NCBI GenBank assembly: GCA_011109175.1
Contig: RDEW01000052.1
Span: forward strand, 253,346 to 317,345
Source of the DNA: Dicyema japonicum
Taxonomy: Eukaryota > Animalia > Dicyemida
Direction: 5' to 3'
DNA: 64,000 bases
Shown: piece after piece, positions 15,097 through 61,514 of the stretch
How positions within the stretch are numbered: the stretch's first letter is position 1
How the letters are laid out: the number at the start of each line of letters is the position of its first letter
The notes under the pieces: generated by a model
What the model was told of the DNA's origin: nothing
What the model saw: only the letters and a program-made list of their open reading frames with translations
Database searches by the model: none
Made by a program: the position numbers and the translations under genes

Positions 15097-16040
15097 TTAA
15101 TGATTGAATAATCCAATCTGTAATGGATAATAACGTCTTCTTTTATATTTTATTATGTAGGCCACAGCAAATATTACAACAATTCCACCTATTACACAAA
15201 TAGCTATTATATTTTGGTTTTCTAAATTTAACTCAATATTACTGATTGGATGAAACTTTATGGTACTTAAATAACTATGAGTAGTCATTGTCTTTAATTT
15301 TGTCTTTAAAGCAATTGAAGTTAATTTTTTGTTTTTAAATTCTACAAATTTCCTTTTAGAATAGTACTGTTTATATAACTTTGAGTTGTAGTTGTCTTTA
15401 TTTTTGTATTCAAATGGGTTGTTGATTTTAATCTGTTATTTCTATTGAAATCACATCCGAGATCTAAATGTAGGCATTTATGAGTACCATTTCCAGTAAA
15501 TAATGTAAAATTATCTGTTTTTAATATTTGCATTTTCATATCTTTTATTTTTATTTTTCCAAAATTAGAAATACGTAAAACTATTTCTCTGCAGTTATAA
15601 TAACCGTTAGATGAAATGTTTATATTTTCAAGTCCATAACGATTATGAGTGGAAATTCGTGATAATCCCCAAGAAACAGAACATATATTAGTTGATCTTA
15701 AATAATCAACCATTATTGAAAAATATATATCATTTTTCTTCCATTTAAGGATAAAATCAAATCGGCCAAATTTTTCGAAATAAAAAATTGCGTCATTTAA
15801 ATTTTCATATATTATCTTTATTAAATATAATGTGATTACAGTATTATTAATTTTATATTCAATGTCAATTATTCCACTAAACAATGCTACAATCCGATCA
15901 TCCTCTAATGCACCCCACATTGGGACATTATTATACAACTTATTAAAGGTCTTAATATTCTTCATTAGTGATTTATTGGTTACCATACACATATATATTA
16001 CTATTATTAATTTATTTTGTAAACCTAGTAATTGGAGCAT
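15097..16040 (-). CDS. LAMP-fold-like type I membrane glycoprotein, family member 1 (about 274 aa spliced)
   Basis: ATG at 16040. Inferred introns 16001-16024, 15816-15839, 15464-15487, 15342-15367 (joins the two track ORFs in frame) and 15222-15242. Hydrophobic N-terminus, SSNGYYNC...KIKDMKMQILKTDNFTLFTGNDLGCD resembling the LAMP domain C-half, Thr-rich stalk, TM helix and tail RRRYYPL (YxxPhi). Confidence 0.7.
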
Positions 16041-16124
16041 CTTCACAGCAATTATTCTAATTATGAATTTAATTTTAATTTAAAATTATTAAACTTATAA
16101 TTTTTATTTAATACTGTCACATTA

Positions 16125-17207
16125 TAATGCTAATTCTCTGACAAATTCGACAAGAGACTTATCAAGTTGCAAATCTATTATTAAATCTGTTTATTTCAAA
16201 AATACGTATTGTATTCAAGAGAACTAAACAAGAGAGGACCGTAATTTTTTGACAACAAAACAGTGGGGTTTCCTTTTATTTAATACTGTCTCATTATAAT
16301 GCTAATTCTCTGACAAATTCGACAAAAGACTTATCAAGTTGCAAATCTATTATTAAATCTAATTATTTCAAAAATACGTATTGTATTCAAGAGAACTAAA
16401 CAAGAGAAAACCGTAATTTTTTGACAACAAACCAGTGGGGTTTCCACGCGAGAAGAACTGGTGCTCACCATATAAACTAGGAGATTGTGAATGTCATAGA
16501 TACTAGTAGGCAGTTACCCGCTAAGAAACTTTTTATCCGGAAGACAGTCTTTCGTCTAAAAAGGAGGAACAAATAAGAATGAGATTATGTTTATAATAGG
16601 AGTCCAACAAAGATCTGGTTTGATCCCAATTTTATTCGACGTATTCATTGTAAGTTTTTCAATATAAAAAAAATTAATATTGGACTAATTATACATGCCG
16701 ATGACGTCAAAGTTGTCGACACACTCTAAGGGATAAGTTTACGACTATGTTGGTTCAAATGATGGCGCAATATGAAAGGATAAAGCTCTCTGATCACATG
16801 GAAGATTATTTGAAAATGTCAGAGCGATAAAAAAGAGGCTTATCAAGCTCTTCTCAGTGCTCGCAAGTTACCCGTAGATATGAACACTTTACTTTATTTT
16901 CAGTTAATCAATATCGATTTGATTTTCTAAGTGCGAGATGAGACTTTCTTTAAAGAAAGAAAAAATTATATTTCTATTGGAGAAAATGAGAACGACAATA
17001 ATGACAGCAATTGATAGCTTAATGAAGAACTAAATAAGTAATAAAAGAAAAAACTCATTTCTATTCATAGTATAATGCAGGAGAGGATCGATGCCAACAA
17101 AAAGAGGTCAAATATGCAAAACACAAACAAAAAACCAATAGAAATAGCTGGATGGATGGAGGGTCTAGGGAGAAGTGTCAATTCACAAAAAGTAGCTCAA
17201 CATGATT
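16125..17207 (+). repeat. Segmental repeat containing a highly degenerate LINE RT remnant (copy 1 of 3)
   Basis: Repeated at 20293-21207 and 41990-42910. Residual QWGFH, GVQQRSGLIPILF and HADD motifs. Confidence 0.75.
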
Positions 17208-17239
17208 GTCGATTGATCTTTGTGCAATTTCATTTTTTT

Positions 17240-20200
17240 ATGTTGTTATCGTAGTGTCATGTGGCTCACCAGAAATGGTGTCACCCATTCCAAAAAGGAA
17301 CGAAAAGAGCCAACAGCTTTCCTCACCGTCCGGTGGTCCTTTCGACTCCTGTGTCTTCGACCCTATCTGGTGTCCCCATTTGTCGAGACTTATGATTCTC
17401 TCATGTGGTGACGTCGAAACCAATCCTGGTCTATGGAGAGATTTTACAATAATACAACTGAATACGAATGGGATCAGGAAGAAAATCTTTGGCACTCCTC
17501 CGCGAAAATGAGACTGACCTCGCTTTAATACAGGAGTCCAAGCTATCTCTTTCCATAAAACACCCTCTTTTCCCGGATACAAAGTGATCCGTAAAGATCG
17601 TCAGGGAGGACTACTTACTATTTTAAAGAACGATATTCCTTTTATGGATACAACTCAACGAACCTCAGAGCTTCTTGGCATTGACAAGACTTTGGAGCAG
17701 ATTACTGTCAGATCGAGTTATTCCCGTCCTTTTACAAAGTGATCCGTAAAGATCGTCAGGGAGGACTACTTACTATTATAAAGAACGATATTTCTTTTAT
17801 GGATACAACTCAACGAACCTCAGAGCTTCTTGGCATTGACAAGACTTTGGACCAGATTACTGTCAGATCGAGTTATTCCCGTTCTTTTGGATCTATTTGG
17901 TTCATTTATATATTCCTCCACAAAGATCGTTTCCGACATCTTACACCCCTGATTTATGACGCATTTCAACATTGAAAAATCTACAGTTATGTTGGGATCT
18001 TAATGCACGACATCCAGTTTGGCTCAGTTCCCAATCCTATGATAACAAATTATCTTCCTAACCTGATTATACTGAACAACCATAGCTCACATACTAGGAC
18101 CCTATTAAGGATGACTGATAGCTGCACATCCCCCGACTTAACACTATGCTCACCTTCTCTGGCTGGACTCATTTCCTGGAACGTCTTTTATGGCTTCTTA
18201 GTGACCACAATCTAATCCTTCTAAAATTGAGAAGTCTTCAACGATACAGGAGACGGCCGGCGGAATCAAAAAGATTCAAGTATTATACGAAAGTTGACTA
18301 GTCAGGTTTCAGTAACCTTAAGGATAAATTCTTGGCCCGGAGATTATCCTCCCCAATACGCTCTATTGATGATGCTGCAGAAATTATCAGCGCTGCCATT
18401 TAGAAAGATGACCATATTTTTATTCCTATATACAAGAAGTTTATTGCTATCCTCAGCTCTTATAAAATAAGTCTTATAAAACAAAGAGACCGGCTGAAGA
18501 TATGCCATCTGTTGGACTTGATGTTTTTGACAGCCCTCAGACAACTAAATATAAGGATCTGTCAGAGCATAAAAAAACACAACGACATGAGATGGTAGCA
18601 TCTAGTTAACCACTTCGACATTTCTGGAAAACTCTTAAACAAGTCCAGTCGGAGCTGGATGATGCAGACGGAACCGGAAAGTCTTCTCCTGGACACTTAT
18701 GCTACTTACATCCTAACATTCTCACGAAACATTACGCTTGAATTAGCTTCAGACCATTCTCGAAACACCTAGACATTATGGTGCGTGCCCATAAACCGAA
18801 GAAGGAACCTTACCACGAACTATTCTCATATGACCAAGTCTTGGATGTTATCACCAGATTAAAATGCTCACGGGCGTGCGGGCCTGACAAAGTATCTTCT
18901 ATTCATCTAAAACACCTAAGCCACTACGAAATTGGCTACCTCACGCAAATATACAACCTGTCCATTAACTATATATTATTCCCAAGATTTGGAAGAATTC
19001 TATCATCAAACCGATATTGCAGGCTGGGAAACCAGAGACAGAACCTGCCTCCTACAGGCCTATTTCCGTTACCAGCACTGTCAAAAATTATGGAGAAACT
19101 TGTATTATCAGTCTTTTTTCCGTATCTTCCACGTCCTATATTTTAACATGGTTCCCTCCCCAGGCAGGTCCACCGCTACATACTTGGCAACTTTATCGCA
19201 GTTCATTGCCGACGCTTTTAACACCCATCCTCCGCCTCAAAAACGCACAATCTTGGTTTCTATTGACATTAACAAAGCCTTTGACACTGTTTCGAGGAAA
19301 ATCCTGGTTAAAAAAATATTTTTCACTAATATTCGTCCGAATGTGAAATTATGGCTGGCCAACTTTTTGTCTGGAAGACGTGGAAGAGTAGTCAGTGGTG
19401 ATCTCAGATCTAGTCCACGATTACAACCGAATGGGGTACCCCAGGGGTCTCCACTTTCACCAATTCTATTCAACCTATTCCTACACGACCTACCTAATGA
19501 TGGAGACGAAGATTTCCTGCTATTATCCTACGCAGACGATGGAGTTATTGCAATACGGAACCGCTCGACGCAAGTCACATTCTTTAAAACTCAGACAAAA
19601 TTGAACACTCTCCACGATTGGATTGTTGGCAGTCGACTAACGATTTCTGCAACCATGTCTATCTGTTCCACATTCACGTCGGACCGCCGTTCCAAGGATG
19701 AACCGAGTCTTTTCATTGGTCCCACTCGGATTCCAGTGACAAGGTTCCCCACTGAACTTGGAGTCAAGTACTGCAGCCTTCTCAATTTCAACTCCACGCA
19801 ACAGACATGATCACCAGGGGGCTCCAGAAAGTTAACGTTATACGCGCCCTTGTTCGGAGGACCACGAGGAACATGGACTTTTCCGTCTCTACCATCTACC
19901 AACAAACATGGTCCAAAGAATCAACTCGATATACCGGAAAACAATCAGTATGCTTTGCCCATCTAATGATTCAACAGTCGACTCACTACTCATGGAAGCT
20001 AAGATCCGTAGTCGTGGCTCCGGATTTCTTGCATCTGTCAAGAAGATGGAAATCCGCTTCGCCTGATCCTTCCCATGGCAAGAGAAAACCGATTGGATAA
20101 GAAATTCCCCTCCGCGATCGGATTCCTCTGCAAGACCGAGAGAAGGCTCTTCCGGAAAGTAGTGGGGACGAAGGAAGATCACAGACGTCGAATGGCACAA

Positions 20201-20292
20201 GTGATTGCGAAAACTGGGATCACCTAACTGTTTGACTCATTTGTCTTTCTTTCTCGGTGTTCCCGGGGTTATTAAAATAAAATAAAATAAAT
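17240..20292 (+). mobile_element. Vingi/Ingi-like APE-RT LINE with N-terminal 2A-like motif, decayed
   Basis: SCGDVETNPGL followed by APE motifs (IIQLNTNGI, LIQESKL) and RT motifs (PPQKRTILVSIDINKAFDTV, GVPQGSPLSPILF, YADD). Ends GIT* followed by a (TAAAA)n tail. 5' boundary approximate. Confidence 0.85.
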
Positions 20293-21350
20293 AATGCTAA
20301 ATCTCTGACAAAGTCGAAAGAGACTTATCAAGTGCAGATGTATTATTAATTCTGATTATTTCAAAAATACGTCTTGTATTCAAGAGAACTCACAAGATAG
20401 GACTGTAATTTTTTGATAACAAAACAGTGGGTTTTCCACTCGAAAAGAACTTGTGCTTCACCATCTAAACTAGGAGATTGTGAATGTCATAGATAATAGT
20501 AGGTAGTTACCTGCTAAAAAACTTTTTATCCGAGGGACAGTCTTTCGTCTAAAAGGGAAGAACAATATAAAAATGAGATTATGTTTATAATAAGAGTCCA
20601 ACAAAGATCTGGTTTGATCCCAATTTTATTTGACGTATTCATTGTAAGTTTTTCAAAATAAAAAAAATTAATATTGGACTAATTATACATGCCGATGACC
20701 TCAAAGTTGAGGACACACTCATAGGGAAGAGTTTAGAGTATGTTGGTTCAAATGAAAAAATACGAAATATGAAAGGATAAAGCTCTCTTACCACATGGAA
20801 GATTATTTGAAAGATGTCAGAGCGATTAAAAAGAGGCTTATCTAGCTCTGTTCAGTGCTCGCAAGTTACCAGGAGATATGAACACTTTACTTTAAGTTTC
20901 AGTTATTCAATATCGATTTGATTTTCTGAGTGCGAGATGAGACTTTTTTTTAAATAAAGAAAAAATTATATTTCCACTGGAGAAATTGAGAACTACAATA
21001 ACGACAGCAATTGATAACTTAATGAAGAACTAAATAAGTAACAAGATAAAAAACTCATTTCTATTCATAGTATAATGCAGGAGAGGATCGATGCCAACAA
21101 AAAGAGGTCAAATATGCAAAACACATACAAAGAACCAATAGAACTAGCTGGATGGATGGAGGGTCTTTGGAGAAGTGTCAATTCACAAAAAGTAGCTCAA
21201 TATGATTTCCTTTTATAACTACAAAATTTATTATAATAAAGTTATTTATAGCTCTTCTTAATGGCGAAAGTAGAATGGTAGAGTTGTAGATTTATTTCTA
21301 TTGTATGGAAATCAATGTTTTTCATAATGTGAACTCTTGTTTTTTTTCTT
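20293..21350 (+). repeat. More diverged copy of the 16.1-17.2 kb segmental repeat; continues at 23970-24240
   Basis: Colinear with 41990-43310 and split by the LINE at 21365-23965. Confidence 0.8.
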
Positions 21351-21364
21351 CTTTTGTAAATGTA

Positions 21365-23965
21365 TTATTATTACCCACATGATCACTGGGTTAAAGAGAA
21401 ATAAATAAAAGTTTTCATCTAACTAAGTGATCCCAGATCGACAAAGGTAAGGACGAGTCCGGCGGGGTCGAGAATCCTGAACAGCGATTCTCATTGGACA
21501 TGGCATCGGCTCAAAATTTCTGTTAAATTGTAGATAATTCAATAGTATTTGGAATAGAGGGCAGCTCGATAGAATAGCCTCCTTTAATAGTTTCCGTTGT
21601 AGTTCGATTAAAAAATTTTCAATGGGTTGGATATTGTGATCTGGTCTAATTAACTTTATTGCAGTTTTCTCTTTTGCAAATAATTTCAATAAAGAATATC
21701 GTGACATTTACATTGCCCATGAAGGACTTGCATACGTCATCGTTGGTCGGATAAATTGTGTGTAAATCTAGTCAAGGACATTAGTTTGATCTCTAAGTGT
21801 TTTTGAGAGCACTTTTAAAATTCTCATTTTTTTCAGAGCAGAAGTTACTTTGTTTTCAACATGCCGGATAAAGGTGAGTCCCTGATCAAAGGTTACTCCT
21901 AGAATCTTCGGTGTTTTGTTAATAGAGATAGCTTCGTTCTTCATAAAGACTTTTGGTTCGATACAGAGCTGTCTCTTGTAGATGGTAAACAGTGTGACAA
22001 AAGACTTTGCTGCTGATGTGTCGATTCTCCGCTTCGTGAGCCATAGTTCCAAGTTGTCGAGCATTGTTGAGCCAACTGAGTCGCTGATTGAATGCTTCTG
22101 TTCTTGGAAGCAATAATGATATCGTCGGCATAAGAGAGGATTAGACAGTTTTCATTACAAGTTTGTGGTATGTCGTTTTTATAGAGATTGAAGAGTTGGG
22201 GTAATAGTGGGAAGCCTTGAGGGATTCCATTTAAGAAATAGCGAGATCTTGATTTGATGTTGTTGCAGAGTAATTGTGCTCGTCTTTTATTTAGGAAGTT
22301 TCCAAGCCAAAGTTTCAGGTTCGGATGGATGTTGGTTTCGTATATTTTCTCTGTTAGGAGTTCCTTAGGGACTGAGTCGAACGCTTTTGTGATGTCCACG
22401 GATATAGTACTGTCCTCTGATGGGGTTCGGGGGAGTTAAATCCTTAATAATAATAATAATAATAACAGCCTAATATCACGGAGCCGTGGTATTAGCTCCG
22501 CATAGGCAGGACACACACTTTATTTAAGTAAAGAACAGTTAATTTTAACTAATCGTAGAACCAAGGAATGATCTTCACTTCTTTTTTTTCTTTTTCTTGT
22601 GTGAGTGTTCTTTCTAGACAATCCAGTTCCGCAGTGAGTATTCACTGATGACGGCGTCACTCGTCAAACGCTTTCCGCATCGTAGATGCGTGGAACCTTC
22701 CACCAGGTGAACAGCAGCGAGATTCGAACCCGTAGCCTAAGCCACTTGAGCCCGACACCTAACCACTAAGCCACCCGGCTGGTTGTCCCGGAATCAAATT
22801 TTTTCAGGAATACTTGGTGTTTTTTTGAAAACTTCCTGTAGGATATAGATGTGTAATATTTAATCAGAGTGTCTGGTTTTATGTAGACTTCGATTTTTCT
22901 CTCGGAGTTAAATCCTTCTGCAATGAATTGTGTGAGGGTTGTAAGGTGTGTTGTTGTCGAATGGTTGTCCCGGAATCCATGTTGTTCGGGATTGAGATTG
23001 AGTCTTGTATTTTTTCCAAAACAAGTTTTTCAAAGATCCTTGAGACCGGACTTAGAATAGATATTGGGCGATAGGAAGATGGTTCATCTATTGGTTTGTT
23101 GGGTTTTCGGATAGGTCTGATTAGAGACTTCTTCTATATTTCAGGGATTGTATTTGTGTAAATGGATAGGTTGAAGATATAGGCTAATAGCTCCAGGGCT
23201 CGATGGCCTAGGTGCTTCAGTTCACATGTGGTTATGTTGTCTGGTCCTTTGGCCTCTGAGTTGTTGGCCTTAGATATGGCTCTGCGAACATCCTGACTAG
23301 TAAATAGGATCCAGTCATCGGAGCGTTTCGGTTCATTTTTTTTCAGGAATACTTGGTGTTTTTTTGAAAACTTCCTGTAGGATATAGATGTGTAATATTT
23401 AATCAGAGTGTCTGGTTTTATGTAGACTTCGATTTTTCTCTCGGGAGGATTTTTTGATGTTTTTGATCTACTTCCACAGTCTTTGTAGAGAGCTTTTGAT
23501 AGCCTCGTCCATCTATTTGCATTTTCTGTCTTTAAGTTATTGTCGATCTCTCTGTTCAATTCTCGTATTTTTTTGATGTTCTCTTCTGTTGGCGATTTTA
23601 CCATCTTTAGATTATTTCGTTCTCTGATCAGATGTTTCGTCGTTGTGTTAAAACGTTTTGATAACGTTGCTTGTCTCCCCATAGCAATTTACTTTTTTTC
23701 GCATCGTTTATAATGGAGTTGAACCATTTCACTAATTGTTCGACGGAGGGAAAAGTGGGGAAATTTAATAGTCCAATACAGTTATTGACGTATTCCTTGA
23801 ATCCTTTCCAATTCGCAAGGCTGTAGTTAGTTATGTTGGCCATTGTCCTTTTATCGTGACCTTGTTTTTTGACCTCCAAAAATATTGGGTTGTGATCACT
23901 CCTGGTGTCATACTTCACTGACCAGTCAATAAGTGGGGCCAAGGATGATGATGACAATGAGATGT
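21365..23965 (-). mobile_element. Second Vingi/Ingi-like LINE family, 5'-truncated
   Basis: SDHNPI (APE end), AKGPDNI, DITKAFDSV, GIPQG, SYADDI and KILGVTFD. Ends SGIT* with a (TAA)n tail. Confidence 0.85.
22446..22780 (-). mobile_element. tRNA-derived SINE (about 335 bp)
   Basis: Minus strand has A box TGGCTTAGTGG, B box GGTTCGAATC, a 3' stem-loop and a (TTA)n tail. A 14-bp duplication GGAGTTAAATCCTT lies at 22432-22445 and 22904-22917. No valid tRNA cloverleaf. Confidence 0.8.
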
Positions 23966-27065: not shown

Positions 27066-27084
27066 GTCATAACCCTTCTCGTTG

Positions 27085-28370: not shown

Positions 28371-28549
28371 AAATTGCCGCCAAAAATTAAATATTAAAAT
28401 TATTATATATTTTTTTTTAATAATATTAAAATATTTTTATATTAATAAGTTAATATCATGGTCATCTTTTCTAAATATTAATAATAAAATCAACATTATT
28501 ATAATTTTTAACATTGCATATGTAGATCACCAATTTGTAAGTATTAGTA

Positions 28550-28985: not shown

Positions 28986-29176
28986 CTTAAGAAGTGACCA
29001 CAATTCACATGTTATTTTCTTCCATGTTGTAAATGTTATAACTAAGCCGATTTTTGTCAATCAAGTCAAAAATTCATGTTCTTTAAAATTGTTTAAAACT
29101 TATATAAATGTGACTTTTTAATTCAAAATGTTATATAAATCAAAAGTTATACAGTCAAAAAAATCAAAATTTTGGG

Positions 29177-29655: not shown

Positions 29656-31310
29656 GGTGAGGTTGTGACGTGCCTCGTTTCTTGATTGGATCGCAATTGA
29701 GAAAAATGTCAAAAAGACAAGGGATACAAAGGAATGCATCTCGTCTAAAGGTCCTTACGCTCAATGCTAGAGGCTTATCTACGACCTGGTCGAGGAAGAT
29801 TCTCAGTGACAACCTGGAGAGATACGACGTATCTATTGAGTGCCTACAAGAGACGAAAGTTACTTGTAGCCTTGATGAGAACCATGGCGAATATCGAATT
29901 ATATGTCAGCCGAGCGACTCAAAATATTATGGATTGGATTTGCCATCCACTCAAAGTTGACAAGTGCAGTCCACCGTATATNNNNNNNNNNNNNNNNNNN
30001 NNNNNNNNNNNNNNNNNNNNNNNNNNNNNNNNNNNNNNNNNNNNNNNNNNNNNNNNNNNNNNNNNNNNNNNNNNNNNNNNNNNNNNNNNNNNNNNNNNNN
30101 NNNNNNNNNNNNNNNNNNNNNNNNNNNNNNNNNNNNNNNNNNNNNNNNNNNNNNNNNNNNNNNNNNNNNNNNNNNNNNNNNNNNNNNNNNNNNNNNNNNN
30201 NNNNNNNNNNNNNNNNNNNNNNNNNNNNNNNNNNNNNNNNNNNNNNNNNNNNNNNNNNNNNNNNNNNNNNNNNNNNNNNNNNNNNNNNNNNNNNNNNNNN
30301 NNNNNNNNNNNNNNNNNNNNNNNNNNNNNNNNNNNNNNNNNNNNNNNNNNNNNNNNNNNNNNNNNNNNNNNNNNNNNNNNNNNNNNNNNNNNNNNNNNNN
30401 NNNNNNNNNNNNNNNNNNNNNNNNNNNNNNNNNNNNNNNNNNNNNNNNNNNNNNNNNNNNNNNNNNNNNNNNNNNNNNNNNNNNNNNNNNNNNNNNNNNN
30501 NNNNNNNNNNNNNNNNNNNNNNNNNNNNNNNNNNNNNNNNNNNNNNNNNNNNNNNNNNNNNNNNNNNNNNNNNNNNNNNNNNNNNNNNNNNNNNNNNNNN
30601 NNNNNNNNNNNNNNNNNNNNNNNNNNNNNNNNNNNNNNNNNNNNNNNNNNNNNNNNNNNNNNNNNNNNNNNNNNNNNNNNNNNNNNNNNNNNNNNNNNNN
30701 NNNNNNNNNNNNNNNNNNNNNNNNNNNNNNNNNNNNNNNNNNNNNNNNNNNNNNNNNNNNNTTTGCGTCCCATCATAATAGTAAATTCATTAAGCAAAGT
30801 CTTGGCAAACATTGTGCTTGAACGAATCAAAGGATCTGCTACAAATACCTACCATATAATTAAAGTGGTTTTCGAGAAGGGAGATCCAAAGCTGATGCGG
30901 TCTGGAGTCACAGATGGAGGTGTGCAACATATCAAAGATACAGTAACACCACCAATATTCTGGGAATTGACCTATCAAAAGCTTTTGATACGGTTAACAG
31001 GAACAAATTAATGGGGGTACTGAGCGGATTTCTTGATGAGTCGAGTCTAAGGATGACCCGAATTCTACTTTCTAACACTGAGCTCCTTGTGAGAGTCGGA
31101 AAGACCTATTCAAAAAATTTTGAAACAAACACGGGCGCTCCACAAGGAGACTGTCTTTCACAATTTATTTGGAAACCTCTATGAGGGAACTAAAACCGTT
31201 ATATTAATGAAAGACGGAAGAAGTAATCTACGCGGACGATGTAGACCTAATTTCTGCAGACAAAGAAGTCCTGGAAAACCTATTAGAAAAAGCACCTGAT
31301 GTACTTGGGA
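29656..31310 (+). mobile_element. RTE-like LINE copy A (gap inside, 3'-truncated)
   Basis: VLTLNARGL, CLQETK, GAPQGDCLS and YADDVDL motifs. Near-identical to 56900-59300, including shared frameshifts. Confidence 0.87.
29982..30761. other. Assembly gap
   Basis: Run of N. Confidence 1.
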
Positions 31311-31681
31311 AAAAAAAACAAAAGTATTACTTTTACTTTCTACAGTCATTAGTTGGGTACTTTCCTTTTAAATAAATGAGTCCTGAGGCATAAATGTGCA
31401 ATTAGTTGTACTGAAAATATAGCTGTATTATGGTTATCTTTAAGACTACATTCGCTTTGATTGTTTTAGCGTTGTTGGCAATTTAAGACGGGCAGTTCAG
31501 TCGTTTTATTGGGACAATAAATAATTTGCTTCATTTTAGTCGATTTGTCGTTAGAATACATTGTAGAATCATAATACAGTTCGACCTCATTTTGGGAATC
31601 AAAAACTGATGGGAAAACCTCGATATTTGTGATTTATCATATTAAGCATCGTTTGCAAAGAAGTCATTACAATGCATTTAA

Positions 31682-40958: not shown

Positions 40959-41904
40959 TTAATGATTGAATACTTCAATCTGTAATGGATAATAACGTCT
41001 TATTTTATATTTTATTATGTAGGCCACAACAAATATTACAACAATTACACCTATTACACAAATAGCTATTATATTTTGGTTTTCTAAATTTAACTCAATA
41101 TTACTGATTGGATGAAACTTTATGGTACTTAAATAACTATGAGTAGTCATTGTCTTTAATTTTGTCTTTAAAGCAATTGAAGTTAATTTTTTGTTTTTAA
41201 ATTCTACAAATTTCCTTTTAGAATAGTACTGTTTATGTAACTTTGAGTTGTAGTTGTCTTTATTTTTGTATTCAAATGGGGTGTTGATTTTAATCTGTTA
41301 TTTCTTTTGAAATCACATCCGAGATCTAAATGTAGGCAATTATGTGTACCATTTCCAGTAAATAATGTAAAATTATCTGTTTTTAATATTTGCATTTTCA
41401 TATCTTTTATTTTTATTTTTCCATATTCAGGAATATGTAAAACTACTTCTCTGCAGTTATAATAACCGTTAGATGAAATGTTTATATATTCAAGTCCATA
41501 ACGAATATGATTGGAAATACATGATAATTCCCAAGAAACAGAACATATATTAGTTGATCTTAAATAATCAACCATTATTGAAAAATATATATATCATTTT
41601 TCTTCCATTTAAGGATAAAATCAAATCGGCCAAATTTTTCGAAATCAAAAATTGCGTCATTTAAATTTTCATATATTATCTTTATTAAATATAATGTGAT
41701 TACAATATTATTAATTTTATATTCAATGTCAATTATTCCAATAAACAATGCTACAATCCGATCATCCTCTAATGCACCCCACATTGGAACATTATTATAC
41801 AACTTATTAAAGGTCTTAATATTCTTCATTAGTGATTTATTGATTACCATACAGATATATATTACTATTATTAATTTATTTTGTAAACCTAGTAATTGGA
41901 GCAT
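40959..41904 (-). pseudogene. LAMP-fold-like family member 2, frameshifted
   Basis: Very similar to 15097-16040 with the same intron signals. One extra AT unit in the (AT)n run at about 41585-41594 shifts the frame. Confidence 0.7.
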
Positions 41905-43310: not shown

Positions 43311-43317
43311 TTTTTTT

Positions 43318-45555: not shown

Positions 45556-45599
45556 TATTCAGGACTATATTTTGAAAATGAAATGGTGGATATAAGAAT

Positions 45600-51780: not shown

Positions 51781-51793
51781 CTGATAGCTCATA

Positions 51794-52330: not shown

Positions 52331-52895
52331 CCGATGCGAGAAAACAGTCGATGCGAAGGGATTGCACCCGCTGTCCTGCAAAACGGTCCGGAAGAGGAAC
52401 ACGTCACGCTGCTCTGAAGGCTAAAGGCTTCCCAGCACAGTTTGAACCAGTGGATTTTGACCGAGGAAATGGAAAGAGACCTGACGGGATGACGCTTTTC
52501 TTTTTCAAATCCGGAAAATCTTCGGTCTGGGAACAACTTGTGTTGACACGTTCTCTAACACGAATCTTTACAAATCAGTTCAGACACCTTTGAGCGGCTA
52601 CTTCGACAGCGGAAAACCTAAAAACCAAAAAATATTCCTGCCTCGGGGACCGCTAGCGATTTACTCATGTTGCGGCTGAGTCATCTGAAGCCGTTGGATT
52701 AATGTCGGCTGAGTTCTTGCGCGAACTCGGTGGAATGCTTGCCAGGAAAAAAAGGAATCAACGAGAAGGGTTATGGCTGAGACAAAAGATTGGAATGGCC
52801 ATACTCCGAGGGAACACGTTCTCGATACACGCAGCCGGCTTCCTCAACTAACATTTGCTTTTCTGTTAAATAATTGTCATTTTTTTCTAAAAAAA
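52330..52895 (+). mobile_element. CRE-like retrotransposon 3' end (RLE domain)
   Basis: RHAAL, GKRPDGMTL, GKSSVW, AENLKTKKY and LRQKIGMAILRGN motifs. Confidence 0.75.
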
Positions 52896-52976
52896 TAATT
52901 CAACTAAATTAAATATTATATTAAATAGAACCAATTAAGTTAGTATAATAATTAAAAATATTTGTAGTTAATGGAC

Positions 52977-53575
52977 TTAAGGTCTTCTGTGATATTTTAA
53001 TATTAAAAAGATTCCAGCAATACCTATAATTCCGACAATTACAAAAACTGCAATGTATTCTAAATTTAAATATTTTAGGTACTTTTTAGACCACTGTTTG
53101 CTAAACTATATGTTTTGGCTATCGTAGAGAAAAAACCTGTTGAGTTTAAATCGTTATCTGCATTAATTATTTATCTACTTTTTCGAATATTTGTAATGAT
53201 AGTTGTTGTAATAGTTTTTGCATTCGTAGTCGAAAAAAAGTTGTGTTTAATTCGCTATCTAATTTAAGTGTATTAACTACCTTTTTGACTGCTTTGACTG
53301 CTAGTTGTGGAAATAAATGTTTTTGGATTCGTGGTCGAAGTACTTGTCGACTTTATTTCGTCTTCTAAATTTAAGTAAGTTATGTACCTTTTGGACTACT
53401 TTGAATAGTAGTTGTAGCAATATATGTATTCTGGTTCGTGATGACTAAAGTTGTTGATTGGAAATCATTATTTTTTGTTTATAAAATTCACATTCTAATG
53501 CTAACAATGATTAGATGTTAATAACCATTTCCAGTAAAACTTGTACTATTATCTGTTTTCAATAATTGGGCTTAC
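52977..53575 (-). pseudogene. LAMP-fold-like family member 4, 3' half with three extra stalk exons
   Basis: QLLKTDNSTSFTGN, then Ser/Thr-rich exons 53281-53364, 53179-53258 and 53083-53157 separated by 21-23 nt introns, then a TM exon. The 5' half is replaced by a LINE remnant. Confidence 0.65.
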
Positions 53576-53689
53576 ACAGGAAAAGATCAAATGAAGGCGA
53601 AAATAAACCAGAGCAGCACCATTAAGGTTCCTCATCCACTGCTATGAGCTCCAAGAAAGTTTCATTTCTGAAGTGTTCCCATTTTTGAG

Positions 53690-54170
53690 TTCTAATCGCC
53701 TGCAAGGAAGGTGTGGGAAAAGCACGTATATCCCCAATCACCACGACGAGATCCGAGATTTTTAATTTCTTGAGGACGTCTCAATGCTATGCCCATTTTT
53801 GGTGCGTAAATGTTAATAATCGTTAAGGCGTTTTCCCGGTTATTAAGTGTAGTATTGATATACCGTCACTGACACTCCAACACTTTTGGATCGAGTTGGC
53901 AAATCTTTTGTGTACCGAAAAAATTTTCCATAGTGTCGACACTCAGGCTTTACGGAATATTAACCTGTATGTTCCGCTACTTCGCCCAGATCTCTGTTTT
54001 AGCTTTGTCTCTTGGAACAATCGACAGACTCCATAACAACGAGATCTTGTAGATATATTTGATAATTCAACAAGCTAACTCATCTAGTTACTTCGATTCC
54101 ATCAAAAGTGAGTCTCTTCACTTGGATGAAAACGCAAAAGCGACATCGCGATTGCTTTCTTCTTTCCTAC
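53690..54170 (-). mobile_element. LINE APE remnant
   Basis: LFQETKL, LTIINIYAP and VVVIGD motifs. Confidence 0.45.
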
Positions 54171-56063
54171 ATTGACGTAATCTTTGTGAGATCCATTTTC
54201 AGATAATCCATGATCTTAATTTGACCCATACTAACATCATCATTGATTCTCTTCCTATTCTACCCAATTCAATAAACCAGACATTTTCCACATTTTTTTT
54301 AATTCGCTCAATATGTATCAAAATTCTTTTCAAAAATAAAGATTTAAATTTTATCGGAGCTAGAACTAATATATTATCTGAATAATAATCACTTTCGAAT
54401 TAGAGTGTTCTACTTTAGGTACTTCACTTATCACTTAACTCTCGTCATATTAATACTTGTCTACTCTAGTATATATAAGTTGTTCTCGCTAGTCATTTTT
54501 AAAGAATTATTATTCGGTCTCTTATCTACGGATGTGAATGGTGGTATTTTTCCCCCAAGAGAGAGACATTAACAAACCTTCTTGATAAGAATAGGAGGAT
54601 GGCGATCAAGAAATTTATGACTGTATAACTACTTGATAACGAAACAGTCCAATATAATTGGAAAAATGAATTTTAAATATTTTTGTTATCATATCAACGA
54701 TGAAATAGATATCAGCGAGAAATTTACAGTGTGAAGTTATAAAGATACGGAACGTTGTTTCATAATGCTTATTAATGTTGTCATACAAGAAAATCTAAAA
54801 ATTTTTTTAGTTATACAGATTTTAAGAAAGTATTGTGAATTTACTACGAAAAAAAACAAAAGAACATGAAAATCACAGATTTTTATCAAAAAATAAAGTC
54901 TTTTTAATTTTAATAAATATTATAATTATTTTTTATTATAAATTAATTTATCTACATTTTTATTAAGATTTTCATCAAGAACTTCATTTTTGGTGAAAAC
55001 CTAAAAAATTGTGGAATTTCCGCCCCATTTCTGGTTCTGACTGTATTATGTTGTATTTAAGTTGGATTTGACTCTTAAATACTTTCTATTATTGAAAGTG
55101 TAATTGTCATCAAAACTTGCCTATTTTATTTCCAAAAAGAGAATATCATATATCTATGTTTACAGATTAGTGATATTATTTTAATATGGTTTACTATAGC
55201 TGGCGAAAATAATCCTTTTACAGATGTTGACTGTCTTTCAATATCATCTTACCTAATGTCCTAACTGTTTATAAAACAATTACAATGACTTGACATCGTG
55301 TGTCCTTTTGCAGTCAATTTGTTATATATTATCTAATTAGTGAAATTAATTTAAAGACAACTCCTATATGTGACACTTGTCAACATCATAATGTCAATTC
55401 TAGTTATTTTTGTTATAAGTTTATCAAAACCACAATTAAATAACAATAATGTTTAAAGATTAGAGACTAAAGTTAGCGATATCGGGATGGATGATCCGAA
55501 TCCCCATACACAGATATTGTTGAATCACTGTCGTAGTACTCCTCATTCAATTCAATCTGTGAGAATTGGCAACTATAATATTTCATAAAATAAACTTAAG
55601 ATTGGAATCACCATCCATTTGAGAATCATAATTGGAGTCCCCAGTTATATTTATTCCGTCAATAAATTGATTGTTTGTTGCCTTCTCTTGTTTATTATTA
55701 AAATTTCCTCTCATCTTAACCATTTGTCTAACAAATTCAAGTATTTCTGCTATTTATGAATTTTATTTTATTATATTAAATAAATATTAAATAAATAAAA
55801 TATTTTATTTAACATTTTCTTTTTGGTAACCATTGGATCATTTCTTGATCAGGATATCTATTTTCGAGTGGAGAAAGACTTCAACACATTTGTTTGTTCG
55901 GAAGCAGTGTCACACGTCCGAATTATTATTTTCTGAACTCCCTCTACTTCTCCGAAAGCAATGGTACCCAATTCTGATACAATTTTCACGATCTCCTCAG
56001 AAATATTCGCATAAAAGTAGTCGATTTAATATACAAGCAACATACCTTCGTTCAGCCAAATTT

Positions 56064-56798
56064 ATCAGCAATTTTTCTATGCTAATCTGAGAAGGAAGTA
56101 TTTTACTTAGCCAATAACAGCACGAGGCTCTTGAGAACTCCGGATAACTCCAACAATGGACTGAGCAATAACTGTGGTCAAACTCTCTTCTCTAAAGATC
56201 AGTCTCTTTGCTAGATATAGATAGAAAGCCAAGGAGAAGGAGCACAGCAGAGATTCATCGAATGTCGGTAGAGACTATAATCGGATATCATAAAACTTTG
56301 ATATTCCTGAGAAAGGCTCGAATTACATCCTCCTTGAGTAGATTGAACCTTGTAACAAGAATTTCCATGCATTCATACATTCTGTCCTTAGTGGAATCGT
56401 CCTGAAATTTAGAGTTCAGTTGTTTGATCAGAGTTTTAAGCAGAAATATTAGGTTATTCTAAAATTAAGAGATAAACACAGTACTGTGGTGGGGAGCTTC
56501 AAAGCTAGCACGATGTATCTGCAGAGGTCAATTGAATGAACATTTTCTGATAGACTGAGAGACTTTTCAATAATTTGGGGGAAATTATCTCCGGAAATGT
56601 TTAATTTGTAAAAAATATTCAAAATCTGAAAAAGATTGTGGGAATCAAGTCTGAATTTCTCTATGAACATACTTTGTTATCAATTCTTCTACAAAAAATG
56701 AAGGACATTTAACGGTTGATTTGTTGGAGTTATCTTTGGTAATAATCTTCATCAGTAAAAAGTAGTAATCAGCAGGAAAGAACTCAAAACTAAAATAT
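56064..56798 (-). repeat. Duplicate of 27085-27905 (LRR-like gene fragment)
   Basis: Direct near-identical repeat. Confidence 0.85.
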
Positions 56799-56899
56799 GT
56801 CCATAAGCCTCTGAGGCATTTCAGAACATTAGTTTTCGTTTCGCATTGTCAAAAAAGGTAAAAATTTAATTTTTTAAGTCAATAAAGTCAAGTTTTTTT

Positions 56900-59700
56900 G
56901 GTGAGGTTGTGACGTCCCTCGTTTCTTGATTGGATCGCAATTGAGAAAAATGTCAAAAAGACAAGGGATACAAAGGAATGCATCTCGTCTAAAGGTCCTT
57001 ACGTTCAATGCTAGAGGCTTATCGACGACCTGGTCGAGGAAGATTCTCAGTGACAACCTGGAGAGATACGACGTATCTATTGGGTGCCTACAAGAGACGA
57101 AAGTTACTTGTAGCCTTGATGAGAACCATGGCGAATATCGAATTATATGTCAGCCGAGCGACTCAAAATATTATGGATTGGATTTGCCATCCACTCAAAG
57201 TTGACAAGTGCAGTCCACCGTATATAGAGTGTGAATGACAGGATCTGTGTTATACAATTCCGACTAAACGACCTACCTTCTTCGAAGATCTTTCTGACAA
57301 TTGCAAATGTTTATGCGCCACACTGCAGGAGACTAGCGAAAGATCCGACAGTACTAGACGACTTCTATTCAACACTGTTACGGACGTATAATGAATATGA
57401 GTCGTCATCACTAGTACTCACTGCTGGGAATTTGAATGCAAAAATCGGGATGAAGAATAACCCGAATGATGTTTTCTTGGGAGAACATGTGCGTGGAATA
57501 AGAAACCTACCCGGAACAAATCTTGGTAACTTTTGTATGTCACACAACCTTTTCCTATGCAATACTGTATTTACGCATCCTGCCTGCCACAAAACTACGT
57601 GGATAAGGAAGCGAAGGAACTCAGATGGAAAGCTGGTCCCAATATACAACCAAATAGATTATGTCATATGCTCTGCTAAAGACATACACCTTCTAGTAAA
57701 CGCACGTTCAAATGAAGGCTCGACGACTGTCAGCGACCAAAAAATAGTTATTGCGACCTTCATCCTTAAAAAACATGCCAGCAAATACAAGAATGCCAAA
57801 AATCACGAATTTGAGAAAATCAGAGGCGACTACGAGACTGAAAGGCTGATTTCCCAACCGGAGACTACTGAGAGATATCAACAATACATTCAGACTCATA
57901 TGCAAGACTTATTGGTGGATACCCCGTAAGAAGACTCCTGGAAACGCATAGAGGACACCACCAACGAAACTGCTGCAGCATGTATTGACAAATGGGAGAA
58001 TAGTAAAATGCACCTGAAGGCTATTCATCCTGATGTTCCTGAGCTTGCGAAAAGTTTAAAATAAATAAATATGAGAAAATCAAATGCCACTGACACTAAT
58101 ACGATAAAAGCCTTTCAAGGCGAAAGGCAACGTGTCAGAATAAAAATAAAGGGTCTGAACAAAAAGCTTTTCATAGTAGAAATAGCTTCATGTATAGAAG
58201 AAGTAAACAAAGTGAAAGACAACGCAAAGGCAACGTGTCAGAATAAAAATAAAGGGTCTGAACAAAAAGCTTTTCATAGTAGAAATAGCTTCATGTATAG
58301 AAGAAGTAAACAAAGTGAAAGACAACGCACAAGTGTACGTCTCTCCCCGTATGCTGCGGTGAACAAACAGAAGTCGACTAAACATAAAAGACGAGAACTG
58401 TAAGCTGATACTGAACACCAAAGAACAAACTGAAGCCATCGCGGCTCACTTTGAGAAGCTTTTCAACATAAAAACAATAGAAATCCACCCATTTGATGGA
58501 AGGCCAAAACCCCTTGAGACACCAATCACGTCCGAGGAAATCAAAACGACCTCCCGAAAACTCAAGAAAAACAGATGCCCCGGACCAGATGAGATAAACC
58601 CAGAATTATTAAAATTTGGCCGTGATCTCCTTTTTGAAAAAATCGTAACACTACTTAATGAAATATTTTCAACTATCTCAACTCTACCTGTGAGTACGGA
58701 ACTACTAATCTCCATACAAAAAACCAACAAAAAAGAGGACCGCTGGAAGGTTTGCGTCCCATCATAATAGTAAATTCATTAAGCAAAGTCTTGGCAAACA
58801 TTGTGCTTGAACGAATCAAAGGATCTGCTACAAATACCTACCATATAATTAAAGTGGTTTTCGAGAAGGGAGATCCAAAGCTGATGCGGTCTGGAGTCAC
58901 AGATGGAGGTGTGCAACATATCAAAGATACTGTAACACCACCAATATTCTGGGAATTGACCTATCAAAAGCTTTTGATACAGTTAACAGCAACAAATAAA
59001 TGGGGGTACTGAGCGGATTTCTTGATGAGTCGAGTCTAAAGATGACCCGAATTCTACTTTCTAACACTGAGCTCCTTGTGAGAGTCGGAAAGACCTATTC
59101 AAAAAATTTTGAAACAAACACGGGCGCTCCACAAGGAGACTGTCTTTCACAATTTATTTGGAAACCGCTATGAGGGAACTAAAACCGTTATACCAAGGAA
59201 AGACGGAAGAAGTATTCTACGCGGACGATGTAGACCTAATTTCTGCAGACAAAGAAGTCTTGGAAAACCTATTAGAAAAAGCACCTGATGTACTAGGGAA
59301 ATGGTTTCTTACTGTAAACAGAGAGAAAACAGAACTCACAGAGATAAGAAAAATGAGCAACGTCCTAGAAGAGAAATGGCGACAATAAAAAAATTCGGTT
59401 CACTTTTGAGAGATAGCGAAAATATTNAGACAAAGAAGTCCTGGAAAACCTATTAGAAAAAGCACCTGATGTACTAGGGAAATGGTTTCTTACTGTAAAC
59501 AGAGAGAAAACAGAACTCACAGAGATAAGAAAAATGAGCAACGTTCTAGAAGAGAAATAGCGACAAGTAAAAAAATTCGGTTCACTTTTGAGAGATAGCG
59601 AAAATATTTTACGTAGGAAAACTCTAGCCAATGCTGCGTTATATAAACTGAAGAATCTATGGCTCAATCAAAAAGGAATCGACACGAAAATGAGAATCCT
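56900..59700 (+). mobile_element. RTE-like LINE copy D, near full-length APE-RT, frameshifted
   Basis: APE motifs NVYAPH, GNLNAKIG, NQIDYV and SDQKIV; CPGPDEI; RT motifs LRPIII, GAPQGDCLS, FYADDVDL and KKFGSLL. Confidence 0.9.
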
Positions 59701-60085
59701 ATCCTGGATGAACATACAGAAAATCAGTGATATTCAGTCCCTATCAGCTACAACTATCGGCAAGTTCGTGAGAACAGTAATTCTCACACTCATCTCTTTG
59801 GAAGATCTTATCGGACAAAATGGGAAGGGATTCGCCGCTTTGAGCCGAAAATCCAACTTCCTAAATGCTCTAATGGATTGGGTTTTACTAGAAGACTTTA
59901 CATCACCCCTCTTGCTTTTCTTTCAAAACCCTCCCGTCCATAGTAAGCTATGTTGGATCTCGGAAAGTCTATTGGAAAAAGATGAGAGACCTGATGGAGG
60001 CGGCCGGGATCACCTAATTAGTTTAATATAATTAAATTAAATATTGGTGTTCTTGGGTTAAATAAAATAAATAAATAAAAAAAAC
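59700..60085 (+). mobile_element. 3' end of a third Vingi-like LINE family
   Basis: Ends DLMEAAGIT*. Its 3' UTR (GGTGTTCTTGGGTTA + TAAA tail) resembles 20217-20292. Confidence 0.5.
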
Positions 60086-60369
60086 TTAAAAATGGCATTT
60101 ATTGAAACTAAATAGAATTATTGCTAAAACTGGCAAAAATTGCATCTTTAATTACTTAAAAGTTAAACGTTTTCAAAAATCATATAATTTAACTCGTTAA
60201 TAAAAAATGACCCTTCCGTGAAAAACGATATTTTATGGAAAACAAATTGCCCTACTCATCACGATCCACAGACGGTTTATCCGACTAACTCTCCACAATC
60301 TACAGAGAGGATATTCGTTAATATTATAGTAAAGAGAACAATATAAATTAGTATTAATGATTGAATGAG

Positions 60370-61514
60370 TTATGACATTAATGAATAATCACGTAGACGT
60401 TTTAATACCAAAACTATAGCAATAATCATAATAATTCCAACAATAACTGTAATTCCCCCAATTACACAAACTGTCATTATATATTTGTCATCTAAATTTA
60501 TATTTTATGTACTTTTTGGACTAATAATAGTTGAAGCATATATTTTGCTTTTTGTAGTGAATAAAGCTGTTGACTTTAATTTGAGATTTTTTCCATAACC
60601 AAATTTACAATCGAATTCTAAATAATGATCAAATTAAAATAACCATTTCCGGTAAAACTTGTATATTATCTGTTTTCAATAATTGTAGTTTCATATCACT
60701 TATTCATATCAATGATATTACCATATGGAGGGAAATACATAACACATTTGCTACATTTATAATAACTGTTTTTAGAATTTCTCCAGAAAATCAACAAATT
60801 TGTCATGATCTAAATTAATAAACCATTTTCTTTACATTTATGCTTAGATGCTGATAATTCCAAACNTTTTTTCGTATATCAAATTTACAGTCGAATTCTA
60901 AATAATGATTAAATTAAAATAACCATTTCCTGTGAAACTTTTATATCATCTGTTTTCAATAATTGTAGTTTCATATCACTTATTCATATCAATGATATTA
61001 CCATATGGAGGGAAATACATAACACATTTGCTACATTTATTATAACTGTTTTTAGAATTTCTCCAGAAAATCAACAAATTTGTCATGATCTAAATTAATA
61101 AACCATTTTCTTTACATTTATGCTTAGATGCTGATAATTCCAAACGTACTGATAATAAATTAGCTGAAGTATGATATTTGGTAGTAAATATTATTTTTAT
61201 GCCATTTTTTCGTCCAAGAAAACATTACTTTACCACATTCAAATTTTTTAAAATCAAATGTTGCATCATTAAAATTTTCATGTAAAATCTTTTTAGTAAT
61301 ATAATGTGATTACAGTATTATTAATTTTGTACGAGACAACAATTTTTCCTTTAAATAATACTATAGTCCGAGCATCCTCTCTAACAACCCACATTGGTAC
61401 TGCATTATCCAATATTACTGAAGTTATAATTTCACTCATTGTTGATTTACAAATGATTATACATGAATATACTGGTAATATTATTTATTATTATATACCT
61501 AGTAATTGGAACAT
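60370..61514 (-). CDS. LAMP-fold-like family member 3 (diverged); contains an n-joined internal duplication
   Basis: ATG at 61514. Introns 61472-61498, 61289-61313 and 60492-60512 sit at positions shared with member 1. VPMWVVREDAR, QLLKTD, TM helix and tail RDYSLMS*. Intactness not fully verified. Confidence 0.6.

Follow-up and report, generated by a model that had tools for sequence, protein, structure and literature searches.

What gene family has left four related copies within a single 64,000-nt stretch (hereafter the window) of the genome of Dicyema japonicum, a parasite of the octopus kidney, and do its members still function as genes? The first-pass annotation had proposed an expanded, fast-diversifying family of LAMP-like surface or endolysosomal proteins with a stalk built of mini-exons, and had regarded it as a candidate variant-antigen system. 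All four copies were found on the minus strand where that annotation had placed them (Table 1); their intron positions are common to the four, and the introns are GT..AG introns of 21-27 nt. Weighing the evidence jointly, we hold it probable that the copies represent a dicyemid-specific family, here termed family A, that descended from a membrane-proximal LAMP domain, evolves by birth and death and carries a modular stalk.

Member 1 is the sole intact copy among the four. Its exons of 16, 161, 328, 96, 99 and 125 nt are separated by introns of 24, 24, 24, 26 and 21 nt, with phases 1, 0, 1, 1 and 1, and they encode, in order, a short hydrophobic N-terminus, a predicted LAMP-fold domain, a stalk to which two exons contribute, then a TM helix and a basic tail. 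The end of exon 3 lies just ahead of the conserved intron upstream of the second Cys. The 99-nt stalk exon lies, as had been claimed, between the 26-nt and the 21-nt intron; self-comparison shows the two stalk units to be similar to each other, and the 3' end of the 26-nt intron is similar to that of the last intron, which points to a duplicated exon-plus-intron unit in this gene. The other three copies are defective. An additional TA in a (TA)n run of exon 3 shifts the frame of member 2 by 2 nt, and exon 3 of member 4 is interrupted by three in-frame stops in addition to a frameshift, irrespective of which copy of an internal duplicate is retained. Member 3 retains the final 50 nt of its exon 3 along with four stalk units (exons of 113, 84, 80 and 75 nt, set apart by introns of 23, 22, 21 and 23 nt) and a TM exon cut short by a premature stop. 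Its full-length relative with an intact stalk is locus L055 on scaffold C35, in which the equivalent of the 80-nt exon measures 81 nt; the 1-nt loss earlier supposed for this exon is therefore correct. The extra stalk exons had been counted as zero, one or three, and these numbers stand, but two labels had been exchanged: it is the third copy that carries three extras and the fourth that has none. Member 3, with its three extras, is thus among the defective copies.

Table 1. Coordinates of the family A copies, of the parts of member 1 and of assembly features in the window
Feature	Position	Strand	Description
Member 1	15097..16040	-	6 exons, 274 aa, open frame, all introns GT..AG
Member 1 exons	16040-16025, 16000-15840, 15815-15488, 15463-15368, 15341-15243, 15221-15097	-	Gene model
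Member 1 exon 3	15488..15815	-	328 nt, phase 0 to 1; the greater part of the LAMP-like domain
Member 1 exon 4	15368..15463	-	96 nt, phase 1-1; second conserved Cys and first stalk unit
Member 1 intron	15342..15367	-	26 nt; frame kept only if spliced out
Member 1 exon 5	15243..15341	-	Extra stalk exon, 99 nt, phase 1-1
Member 1 last exon	15097..15221	-	TM helix, basic run, Y-Y-P-L, conserved C-terminus
Member 2	40959..41904	-	Copy of member 1, 97% identical, inside a duplication of several kb
Member 3	52977..53575	-	Pseudogene fragment, 5'-truncated
Member 4	60370..61514	-	Pseudogene without a separate stalk exon
Assembly gap	29982..30761	.	Between members 1 and 2; touches no member
Assembly gap	14328..14938	.	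Begins 159 nt downstream of the member 1 stop codon
Direct duplicate	60588..61145	.	Two 279-nt copies, 96% identical, flanking a single N (60866), inside member 4

The sequences on either side of the gap between members 1 and 2 have counterparts at 56800-57225 and 58751-59301 in a paralogous segment, and their order is preserved there, which makes continuity across the gap plausible; judged from this sequence match, the gap probably hides about 1.5 kb, not 780 nt. The other gap is preceded by a very high-copy repeat with reverse transcriptase (12155-14327), which is missing from the locus of member 2. The direct duplicate in member 4 is probably an unmerged contig overlap. The same pattern of a duplicate around a single N is also seen at N 8289 and N 59427.

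Intron lengths vary between paralogues (23-26 nt for intron 2 and 24-26 nt for intron 3), and despite this variation the exons are in frame only after removal of the GT..AG segments, which indicates that the introns are real. A neighboring kinase gene is unspliced in the contigs of four DNA runs, and these runs are hence uninformative on splicing. A ciliate genetic code, which the short introns had brought to mind, was ruled out: the source is D. japonicum, and TAA ends the conserved tail. The stalk mini-exons are symmetric (phase 1-1), each with its own intron of 21-26 nt, as had been proposed, so that units can be gained or lost without a frame shift. The suggestion that stalk length is changed by whole exons holds in that their number differs between well-supported sister paralogues: a 102-nt homologue of exon 5 of member 1 is present in loci L012, L029 and L037 and missing from their sisters L018, L021 and L022. 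The stalk is also lengthened by in-frame repeats within an exon. Between one and four stalk units separate the last Cys from the TM exon; measured with its introns, the stretch that follows exon 3 up to the TM exon spans about 150-460 nt in most loci. Family A offers a clean example of micro-introns letting symmetric mini-exons serve as length modules.

A search of the D. japonicum genome (67,542,437 bases in 377 scaffolds) with member 1 returned 140 matches, down to E 6e-148 and more than expected by chance, which resolve into about 80 loci on more than 35 scaffolds, with arrays on scaffolds C35, C44, C90 and C10. A complete spliced frame from the start codon through the TM helix to the stop is found in 13-15 of them, so that the family comprises far more than a few copies, at least 13 of them intact. 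The number of loci, the arrays on several scaffolds and the duplication of several kb in the window bear out the claimed spread by segmental duplication, to which tandem duplication must be added. Counted by hand, 17 of 40 loci are no more than 50 kb from a scaffold end, which in this fragmented assembly is not clearly above expectation. Carriage as the cargo of a transposon, or origin as a retroviral env-like gene, was ruled out: similarity ends about 70 nt upstream (-70 nt) and at the stop codon, and the copies keep at least five introns.

Given such numbers of copies, the family might be essentially dead, a decaying gene relic whose intact members are simply the youngest and have no present function. 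About 60 of the roughly 76 loci examined yielded no full model, so that most copies are broken, as are three of the four in the window; the copies are located among retrotransposon debris; and the overall dN/dS, calculated like the frame checks, the alignment and the tree on joined spliced models, is about 0.9 (median 0.91), with the three codon positions differing equally on average, as under neutral decay. The codons of exon 3, however, separate into 49 that are hypervariable and 26 that are conserved, and these 26 core codons show differences of 0.023, 0.023 and 0.204 at positions 1, 2 and 3, i.e. they are nearly invariant at the first two positions and ninefold more variable at the third. 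The core codons are under purifying selection while the remainder are hypervariable, and the fast divergence that had been claimed is indeed found in most ectodomain codons around this core. Moreover, paralogues at dS 0.3-0.5 keep open frames and splice sites, similarity between loci is retained from about -70 nt through the stop codon where the flanking DNA has diverged beyond recognition, and the cytoplasmic tail is conserved across subfamilies. These observations make a wholly dead family quite unlikely in our view.

The identity of the domain rests on predicted structure, and here a rival reading is that the LAMP resemblance is convergent or a modeling artefact and that family A encodes an unrelated, lineage-specific beta-sandwich protein. 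Sequence methods link family A to neither LAMP nor anything outside the D. japonicum genome. Single exons, or read-through ORFs in which introns were retained in frame, served as input for searching and folding. The member 1 ORF and exon 3 of loci L027, L055 and L018 gave no Pfam match at E up to 10, a word-based protein search found no relative, the family A profile gave only a spurious short repeat match (single-chain adiponectin) among PDB sequences, and a search of 1.84 billion representatives with it gave 0 matches at E <=0.001. A feature search with ESM returned low-recognition viral acetyltransferase clusters, which were treated as noise. Sequence identity with the LAMP structures amounts to 6-12%, and one of the two LAMP disulfides is absent, the N-terminal Cys pair of LAMP domains being missing. 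Family A has instead a single conserved pair, 38 residues apart, in the C-terminal third of the domain; the corresponding spacing in LAMP-1 is 37, a similarity that would argue against convergence.

Structure comparison gave a more specific answer. Two AlphaFold models were computed from the read-through ORF of member 1, with two 8-residue retained introns in the modeled stretch and a paralogue-only alignment. The first reached pLDDT 54 and pTM 0.52; the best seven Foldseek matches were to LAMP-1, LAMP-2 and LAMP-3 (top E 1.7e-5), and VIA-align recovered six LAMP-fold chains at Z 10.5-11.8, the next chain being at 6.5. For the second, from a better alignment, pTM rose to 0.65 and pLDDT was 78-89 in most 10-residue blocks of the core (residues 11-150); it recovered the same six chains at Z 12.9, 12.8, 12.6, 12.4, 11.4 and 11.1, the next being at 5.2, with 122-140 residues superposed at an rmsd of 2.6-3.6. 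In both models the second Cys and the stalk were of low confidence. The chains matched are those of LAMP-1, LAMP-2, LAMP-3 (DC-LAMP, 4akm) and the V-ATPase subunit Ac45; over the two models Foldseek E-values extended down to 1.7e-6, and with either model these six representatives were the only ones among 48,161 chains at Z >=8. In the ESM Atlas, the third structure library, LAMP5 and LAMP3 clusters ranked first. LAMP-fold chains alone thus top three structure libraries, and the LAMP-like fold that had been suspected from motifs is supported as a prediction.

A further line of comparison comes from a second family of the same genome. A scan of the whole genome with PF01299 found matches in this family only, termed family B, which comprises six two-domain loci (L031-L036) with Lamp2-like_luminal as their best Pfam match (E 2e-4 to 9e-3) and, in five of the six, the sole one. 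Like family A it has micro-introns, and its 334-nt domain exon matches exon 3 of family A (322-328 nt) in size and shares its phases (0 to 1) and the motifs at its start and end; in both families, a Cys lies four residues into the exon that follows. The profile of family A aligns end to end with all six loci. A comparison of the two families by hhalign was not significant (E 0.06 over 23 columns), in keeping with convergence, and family B differs in its two domains, its Pfam match, a TM helix near the last Cys and its mere six loci. The shared exon structure with a bona fide LAMP-type family, together with the exclusive recovery of LAMP-fold chains, nevertheless leads us to consider convergence or artefact unlikely.

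As regards the remaining features of the predicted protein, the architecture first described needs amendment. The hydrophobic N-terminus, the one TM helix and the short tail stand; the domain is not bounded by Cys residues, and the stalk is rich in Thr and Lys and not plainly in Ser and Thr. A type I topology is predicted from a short hydrophobic N-terminus and a hydropathy maximum of 2.6-3.0 near the C-terminus. In most intact models the cytosolic tail is basic and 17-19 residues long. The proposed YxxPhi signal applies to some members only (Y-Y-P-L), many others carrying F-Y-P-L: what is conserved is an internal [FY]-Y-[PS]-L after a basic run, which gives Y-x-x-hydrophobic only where the first residue is Y. 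N-glycosylation sequons are not enriched relative to shuffled sequence, with 3-5 in most of 12 full models and nine in locus L013. We infer that the domain would face the lumen or the outside, that the stalk may be O-glycosylated and that the tail may direct endocytic or lysosomal traffic.

Could the family then be a variant-antigen system, in which one or a few members are expressed at a time and stalk exons are skipped so that the surface is varied? Its size, its many pseudogenes and its conserved framework with hypervariable segments are as such a system would have them; symmetric exons would permit skipping, and the variable codons differ more at positions 1 and 2 than at position 3 (0.50, 0.55 and 0.38), though these codons were chosen for being variable. 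To our knowledge, however, the cephalopod hosts have no antibody-type adaptive immunity, which removes the usual driver of antigenic variation, and the differences in the stalk are fixed genomic differences between paralogues. We regard such a system as improbable. A related reading, also doubtful, sees in the intact members a diversifying coat where this mesozoan meets its host, presenting a LAMP-derived ectodomain at variable height and being differentially expressed by stage, cell or host; stalk length would then be set by gain, loss or skipping of the symmetric mini-exons.

Returning to the dicyemid-specific, LAMP-derived family that we favor, its ancestor would most likely have been the membrane-proximal domain of a LAMP-type gene. 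An intact gene would encode a small type I protein with a hydrophobic leader, one LAMP-fold beta-prism of ~150 residues with one disulfide pair, a Thr/Lys-rich stalk, one TM helix and the conserved basic tail of 17-19 residues. Growth to about 80 loci would have proceeded through tandem and segmental duplication, with birth and death leaving most copies broken and at least 13 intact, while stalk mini-exons, each with its own intron of 21-26 nt, would have been gained or lost in frame. The proteins might coat membranes, apical or endolysosomal, of the peripheral cells, whose food is taken from host urine by endocytosis. Dicyemids are described as feeding by endocytosis across their outer cells, and an amplified, fast-changing LAMP relative is therefore a specific candidate for this adaptation. 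With a reported content of only 5,012 genes, the genome carries about 80 loci of a predicted LAMP-fold family that is invisible to sequence search. The D. japonicum genome paper reports no such cluster, and we found nothing in the searchable literature linking Dicyema with LAMP; as the published annotation masked repeats occurring more than 30 times ahead of cDNA mapping, the family was probably overlooked.

Among known systems, multicopy variant surface families of parasites such as trypanosome VSG and Plasmodium var are likewise large and clustered in repeat-rich DNA, with numerous pseudogenes and with hypervariable stretches set in a conserved scaffold. They have another fold, however, and family A belongs to a parasite whose host lacks antibody-based immunity. 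Further comparisons are with LAMP proteins, which line lysosomes and of which animals usually carry a handful of genes. Ac45 (ATP6AP1) has a luminal LAMP-like fold (Z 11.1-11.4) followed by a single TM helix; it is, however, a single-copy proton-pump subunit with its domain beside the membrane, and nothing points family A to the V-ATPase. With LAMP-1 and LAMP-2 (PF01299), family A shares a predicted beta-prism matching over 130-140 residues (Z 12.4-12.9), type I topology with one TM helix and a short tyrosine-containing cytosolic tail, and a Cys pair that lies in the C-terminal third of the domain, an aromatic-x-Gly motif standing shortly ahead of the last Cys. It differs in having one domain and one disulfide in place of two of each, no Pfam match, no enrichment in sequons and ~80 genomic copies as against one or two; its stalk lies between domain and membrane, whereas that of LAMP-1 and LAMP-2 lies between the two domains, so that the LAMP domain, which otherwise adjoins the membrane, is held away from it by the intervening stalk units. 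Similar in plan are the single-domain relatives LAMP-3/DC-LAMP, CD68 and LAMP5, each of which combines one LAMP domain and a mucin-like region with a TM helix and a short tail; two of them, LAMP-3 and LAMP5, also rank among the top structural hits (4akm; Atlas clusters of LAMP5 and LAMP3). The mucin region of LAMP-3 and CD68 is at the N-terminus, with the LAMP domain next to the membrane; family A, its sequence too diverged for profile detection, has these parts in the reverse order.

The four minus-strand copies that the first-pass annotation had assigned to a LAMP-fold-like family, here termed family A, are all present in the window at the positions claimed; only its labels for members 3 and 4 were swapped, its remaining description being accurate. 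Member 1 comprises exons of 16/161/328/96/99/125 nt, separated by GT..AG introns of 24/24/24/26/21 nt in phases 1,0,1,1,1, and encodes a product of 274 aa. Its three 24-nt introns contain no stops, so that it also presents a 225-codon read-through ORF, and removal of the 26-nt intron alone is strictly needed for its frame. Member 2 is a 97% copy of member 1 situated inside a duplicated block, with a frame broken by an additional TA in the domain-encoding exon (exon 3). Member 3 is a fragment in which 50 nt from exon 3 precede four stalk exons (113, 84, 80 and 75 nt) and a TM exon bearing a premature stop; the 1-nt loss proposed for its 80-nt exon is borne out by the related locus L055, which has 81 nt there. 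Exon 3 of member 4 contains one frameshift and three in-frame stops, even after collapsing the 279-nt duplicate around the N at 60866.

When the member 1 ORF was searched against the genome in six frames, it recovered 140 matches. These represent about 80 loci spread over more than 35 scaffolds, with arrays on C35, C44, C90 and C10, supporting the proposed expansion of the family. Modelling of 76 loci with a small dynamic program permitting GT..AG introns of 19-34 nt yielded a complete frame, i.e. conserved start, domain, TM helix and tail, in 13-15 of them; the remainder are partial or broken. The introns themselves are supported by their variation in length between copies (23, 24, 25 or 26 nt for intron 2; 24, 25 or 26 nt for intron 3), with the flanking exons being in frame across paralogues only once they are removed. 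The 5' half of intron 2 has a diversity of 0.10 between paralogues, lower than that of the variable exon codons (0.5). According to a 2026 survey, introns below 30 bp occur among animals only in myxobolids and in D. japonicum. The loci resemble one another from about 70 nt 5' of the start codon to the stop codon, and the conserved unit is thus the gene itself rather than a surrounding mobile element.

The window lies on scaffold C326 (positions 253346-317345) of an assembly whose 377 scaffolds total 67,542,437 bases; this agrees with the published description of the D. japonicum genome, which gives 67.5 Mb in 377 scaffolds, with repeats making up 49% and introns being very short. The window sequence is AT-rich and strongly repetitive, and holds reverse-transcriptase ORFs, multi-kb segmental duplications and four N sites or gaps of relevance. 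Both flanks of the gap between members 1 and 2 align, with order and orientation kept, to a paralogous segment in which their counterparts are separated by about 1.5 kb; hence, its stated 780 nt is probably too small. At the second gap, contigs in which 12047-12154 is fused straight to 14939 onward mirror the arrangement of the member 2 locus. The single Ns look like overlapping contig ends left unmerged, perhaps due to haplotype differences.

Features of the window and loci of the second, LAMP-type family
Feature	Location	Remarks
Member 1	15097-16040	minus strand
Member 2	40959-41904	minus strand
Member 3	52977-53575	minus strand
Member 4	60370-61514	minus strand
Assembly gap	29982-30761	between members 1 and 2, within no member
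Second assembly gap	starts 159 nt 3' of member 1 stop codon	preceded by very high-copy repeat with reverse transcriptase
Single Ns	8289, 59427, 60866	each between direct copies of 180-279 nt, 95-98% identity
High-copy stretch	12100-14327	summed word depth in DNA runs ~1,000-3,000x single-copy kinase gene; reverse-transcriptase ORF at 13744-14301; inserted 3' of member 1, missing at member 2 locus
RVT_1 reverse-transcriptase ORFs	18932-19810, 21941-22399	between family members
172-nt tandem duplication	16102-16445	in member 1 5' flank; relative at 20291-20437 without adjoining gene
Duplicated segment	27082-33342 and 56061-64000	collinear except 2.6-kb stretch 59302-61886 bearing member 4, without counterpart at 31313-31315
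Family B	L031-L036, on scaffolds C24, C1, C355, C322, C312, C374	micro-introns; Pfam match

The distance from the end of exon 3 to the TM exon is 145-187 nt in most members, corresponding to a single stalk exon. It is 261-267 nt, with two stalk exons, in members 1 and 2 and in L002, L003, L012, L029, L037 and L049, about 350 nt in L006, and 461 nt, with four units, in member 3 and L055. The extra stalk exons (96-102, 84, 81 and 75 nt) are each a multiple of three and lie between phase-1 introns. Such in-frame phase-1 mini-exons, differing in number between related paralogues, support the modular stalk that had been proposed. In member 1 the two stalk units resemble each other, and the similarity takes in the intron tail of the first and the intron of the second; this is the footprint of an exon duplicated along with its micro-intron. 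A second route to a longer stalk is an in-frame tandem repeat of 27 nt in 4.3 copies within a stalk exon of L006 (L006:1227-1342). In the exon 3 tree stalk length varies inside well-supported clades, namely between L006 and L015, and between L012, L029 and L037 on one side and L018, L021, L022 and L005 on the other, implying that units were repeatedly gained or lost. These are fixed differences between genes. In the four-unit subfamily (L055, C35:1389900-1392900; window 53388-53500) exon 4 measures 113 nt where 114 are needed, so that L055 and member 3 have in common a frameshift of 1 nt following the Cys motif, unless the frame is preserved by an 81-nt intron omitting the Cys. A direct repeat of about 120 nt over the last intron and the TM exon start of L019 (C343) is either genuine or an assembly artefact.

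The median pairwise dN/dS of exon 3 is 0.91 and its three codon positions are on average equally divergent, which on its own looks neutral. This average masks two classes of codons: 26 that are near-invariant at positions 1 and 2 (0.023, with 0.204 at position 3), and 49 that diverge by 0.50 and 0.55 at positions 1 and 2, more than the 0.38 at position 3, a contrast inflated by the classes having been picked by variability. For the TM-plus-tail exon the ratio is 0.72, and the tail is well conserved. Given that N-glycosylation sequons are not enriched in the family A models, the proteins are putative glycoproteins, with the Thr-rich stalk as the basis of the label.

The first-pass annotation had further raised a candidate variant-antigen system. 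Since the host is a cephalopod, the usual driver of antigenic variation is unlikely to apply to family A. The sequencing runs containing the locus are genomic only: the kinase gene adjoining the family is unspliced in their contigs, and their depth over family A is far above single copy. The function, localisation and expression of the family A proteins are inferred. RNA-seq of D. japonicum has been published; in the published annotation repeats present more than 30 times were masked ahead of cDNA mapping, which is probably why family A is missing from the reported multi-copy clusters. A literature search recovered no paper connecting Dicyema with LAMP.

At the sequence level, family A matched no family in Pfam and nothing in a word-based protein search, and its profile recovered no relative among PDB sequences and 0 matches among 1.84 billion representatives. 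AlphaFold predictions were obtained for the read-through ORF of member 1 (204 residues, including two 8-residue retained introns), with single exons and read-through ORFs of paralogues as alignment rows. The first model, from 27 rows, is weak (pLDDT 54, pTM 0.52); its best seven Foldseek matches in the PDB are LAMP-1, LAMP-3 and LAMP-2 domains, with the V-ATPase subunit Ac45 next, and an exhaustive VIA-align scan gave Z-scores of 10.5-11.8 for six LAMP-fold representatives (LAMP-1, -2, -3, Ac45), the next being 6.5. The second model, from 61 correctly registered rows, reached a pTM of 0.65, with a pLDDT of 78-89 in most 10-residue blocks of its core (residues 11-150) and low-confidence modelling past residue 154, a region covering a retained intron, the second Cys and the stalk. 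It matched the proximal domain of LAMP-1 with a Z-score of 12.9 (140 residues aligned, rmsd 3.6), followed by DC-LAMP (12.8), the distal domains of LAMP-2 (12.6) and LAMP-1 (12.4) and Ac45 (11.4 and 11.1), the next match being 5.2. Foldseek agreed on a LAMP fold (E 1.7e-6), and LAMP5 and LAMP3 clusters ranked first in the ESM Atlas. LAMP-fold chains hence head the Foldseek, VIA-align and ESM Atlas results for these models, in line with the fold originally suggested, and the predictions make it quite likely that the family A domain adopts the LAMP fold.

Family A escaped a whole-genome scan with the Pfam LAMP profile, which found six other loci (family B). Their exon ORFs have Lamp2-like_luminal as best Pfam match (E 2e-4 to 9e-3, below the curated cut-off), and in five of the six it is the sole one. 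The gene models specify two-domain proteins of canonical LAMP type, in which the last Cys is closely followed by a TM helix. The family A profile aligns end-to-end with all six loci at 2-5 bits, and an hhalign comparison of the two families gives E 0.06; the correspondence is collinear but falls short of significance. The membrane-proximal domain of family B is encoded by a 334-nt exon running from phase 0 to phase 1, with a Cys four residues inside the following exon. Exon 3 of family A (322-328 nt) has the same phases and boundaries, and shares with it a four-residue start motif and an end motif of the form aromatic-T-G-basic/N. Together with the predicted fold, these collinear exon features and the profile alignment suggest that family A probably, if with somewhat less assurance than the fold itself, branched off from the LAMP membrane-proximal domain and has strongly diverged from it.
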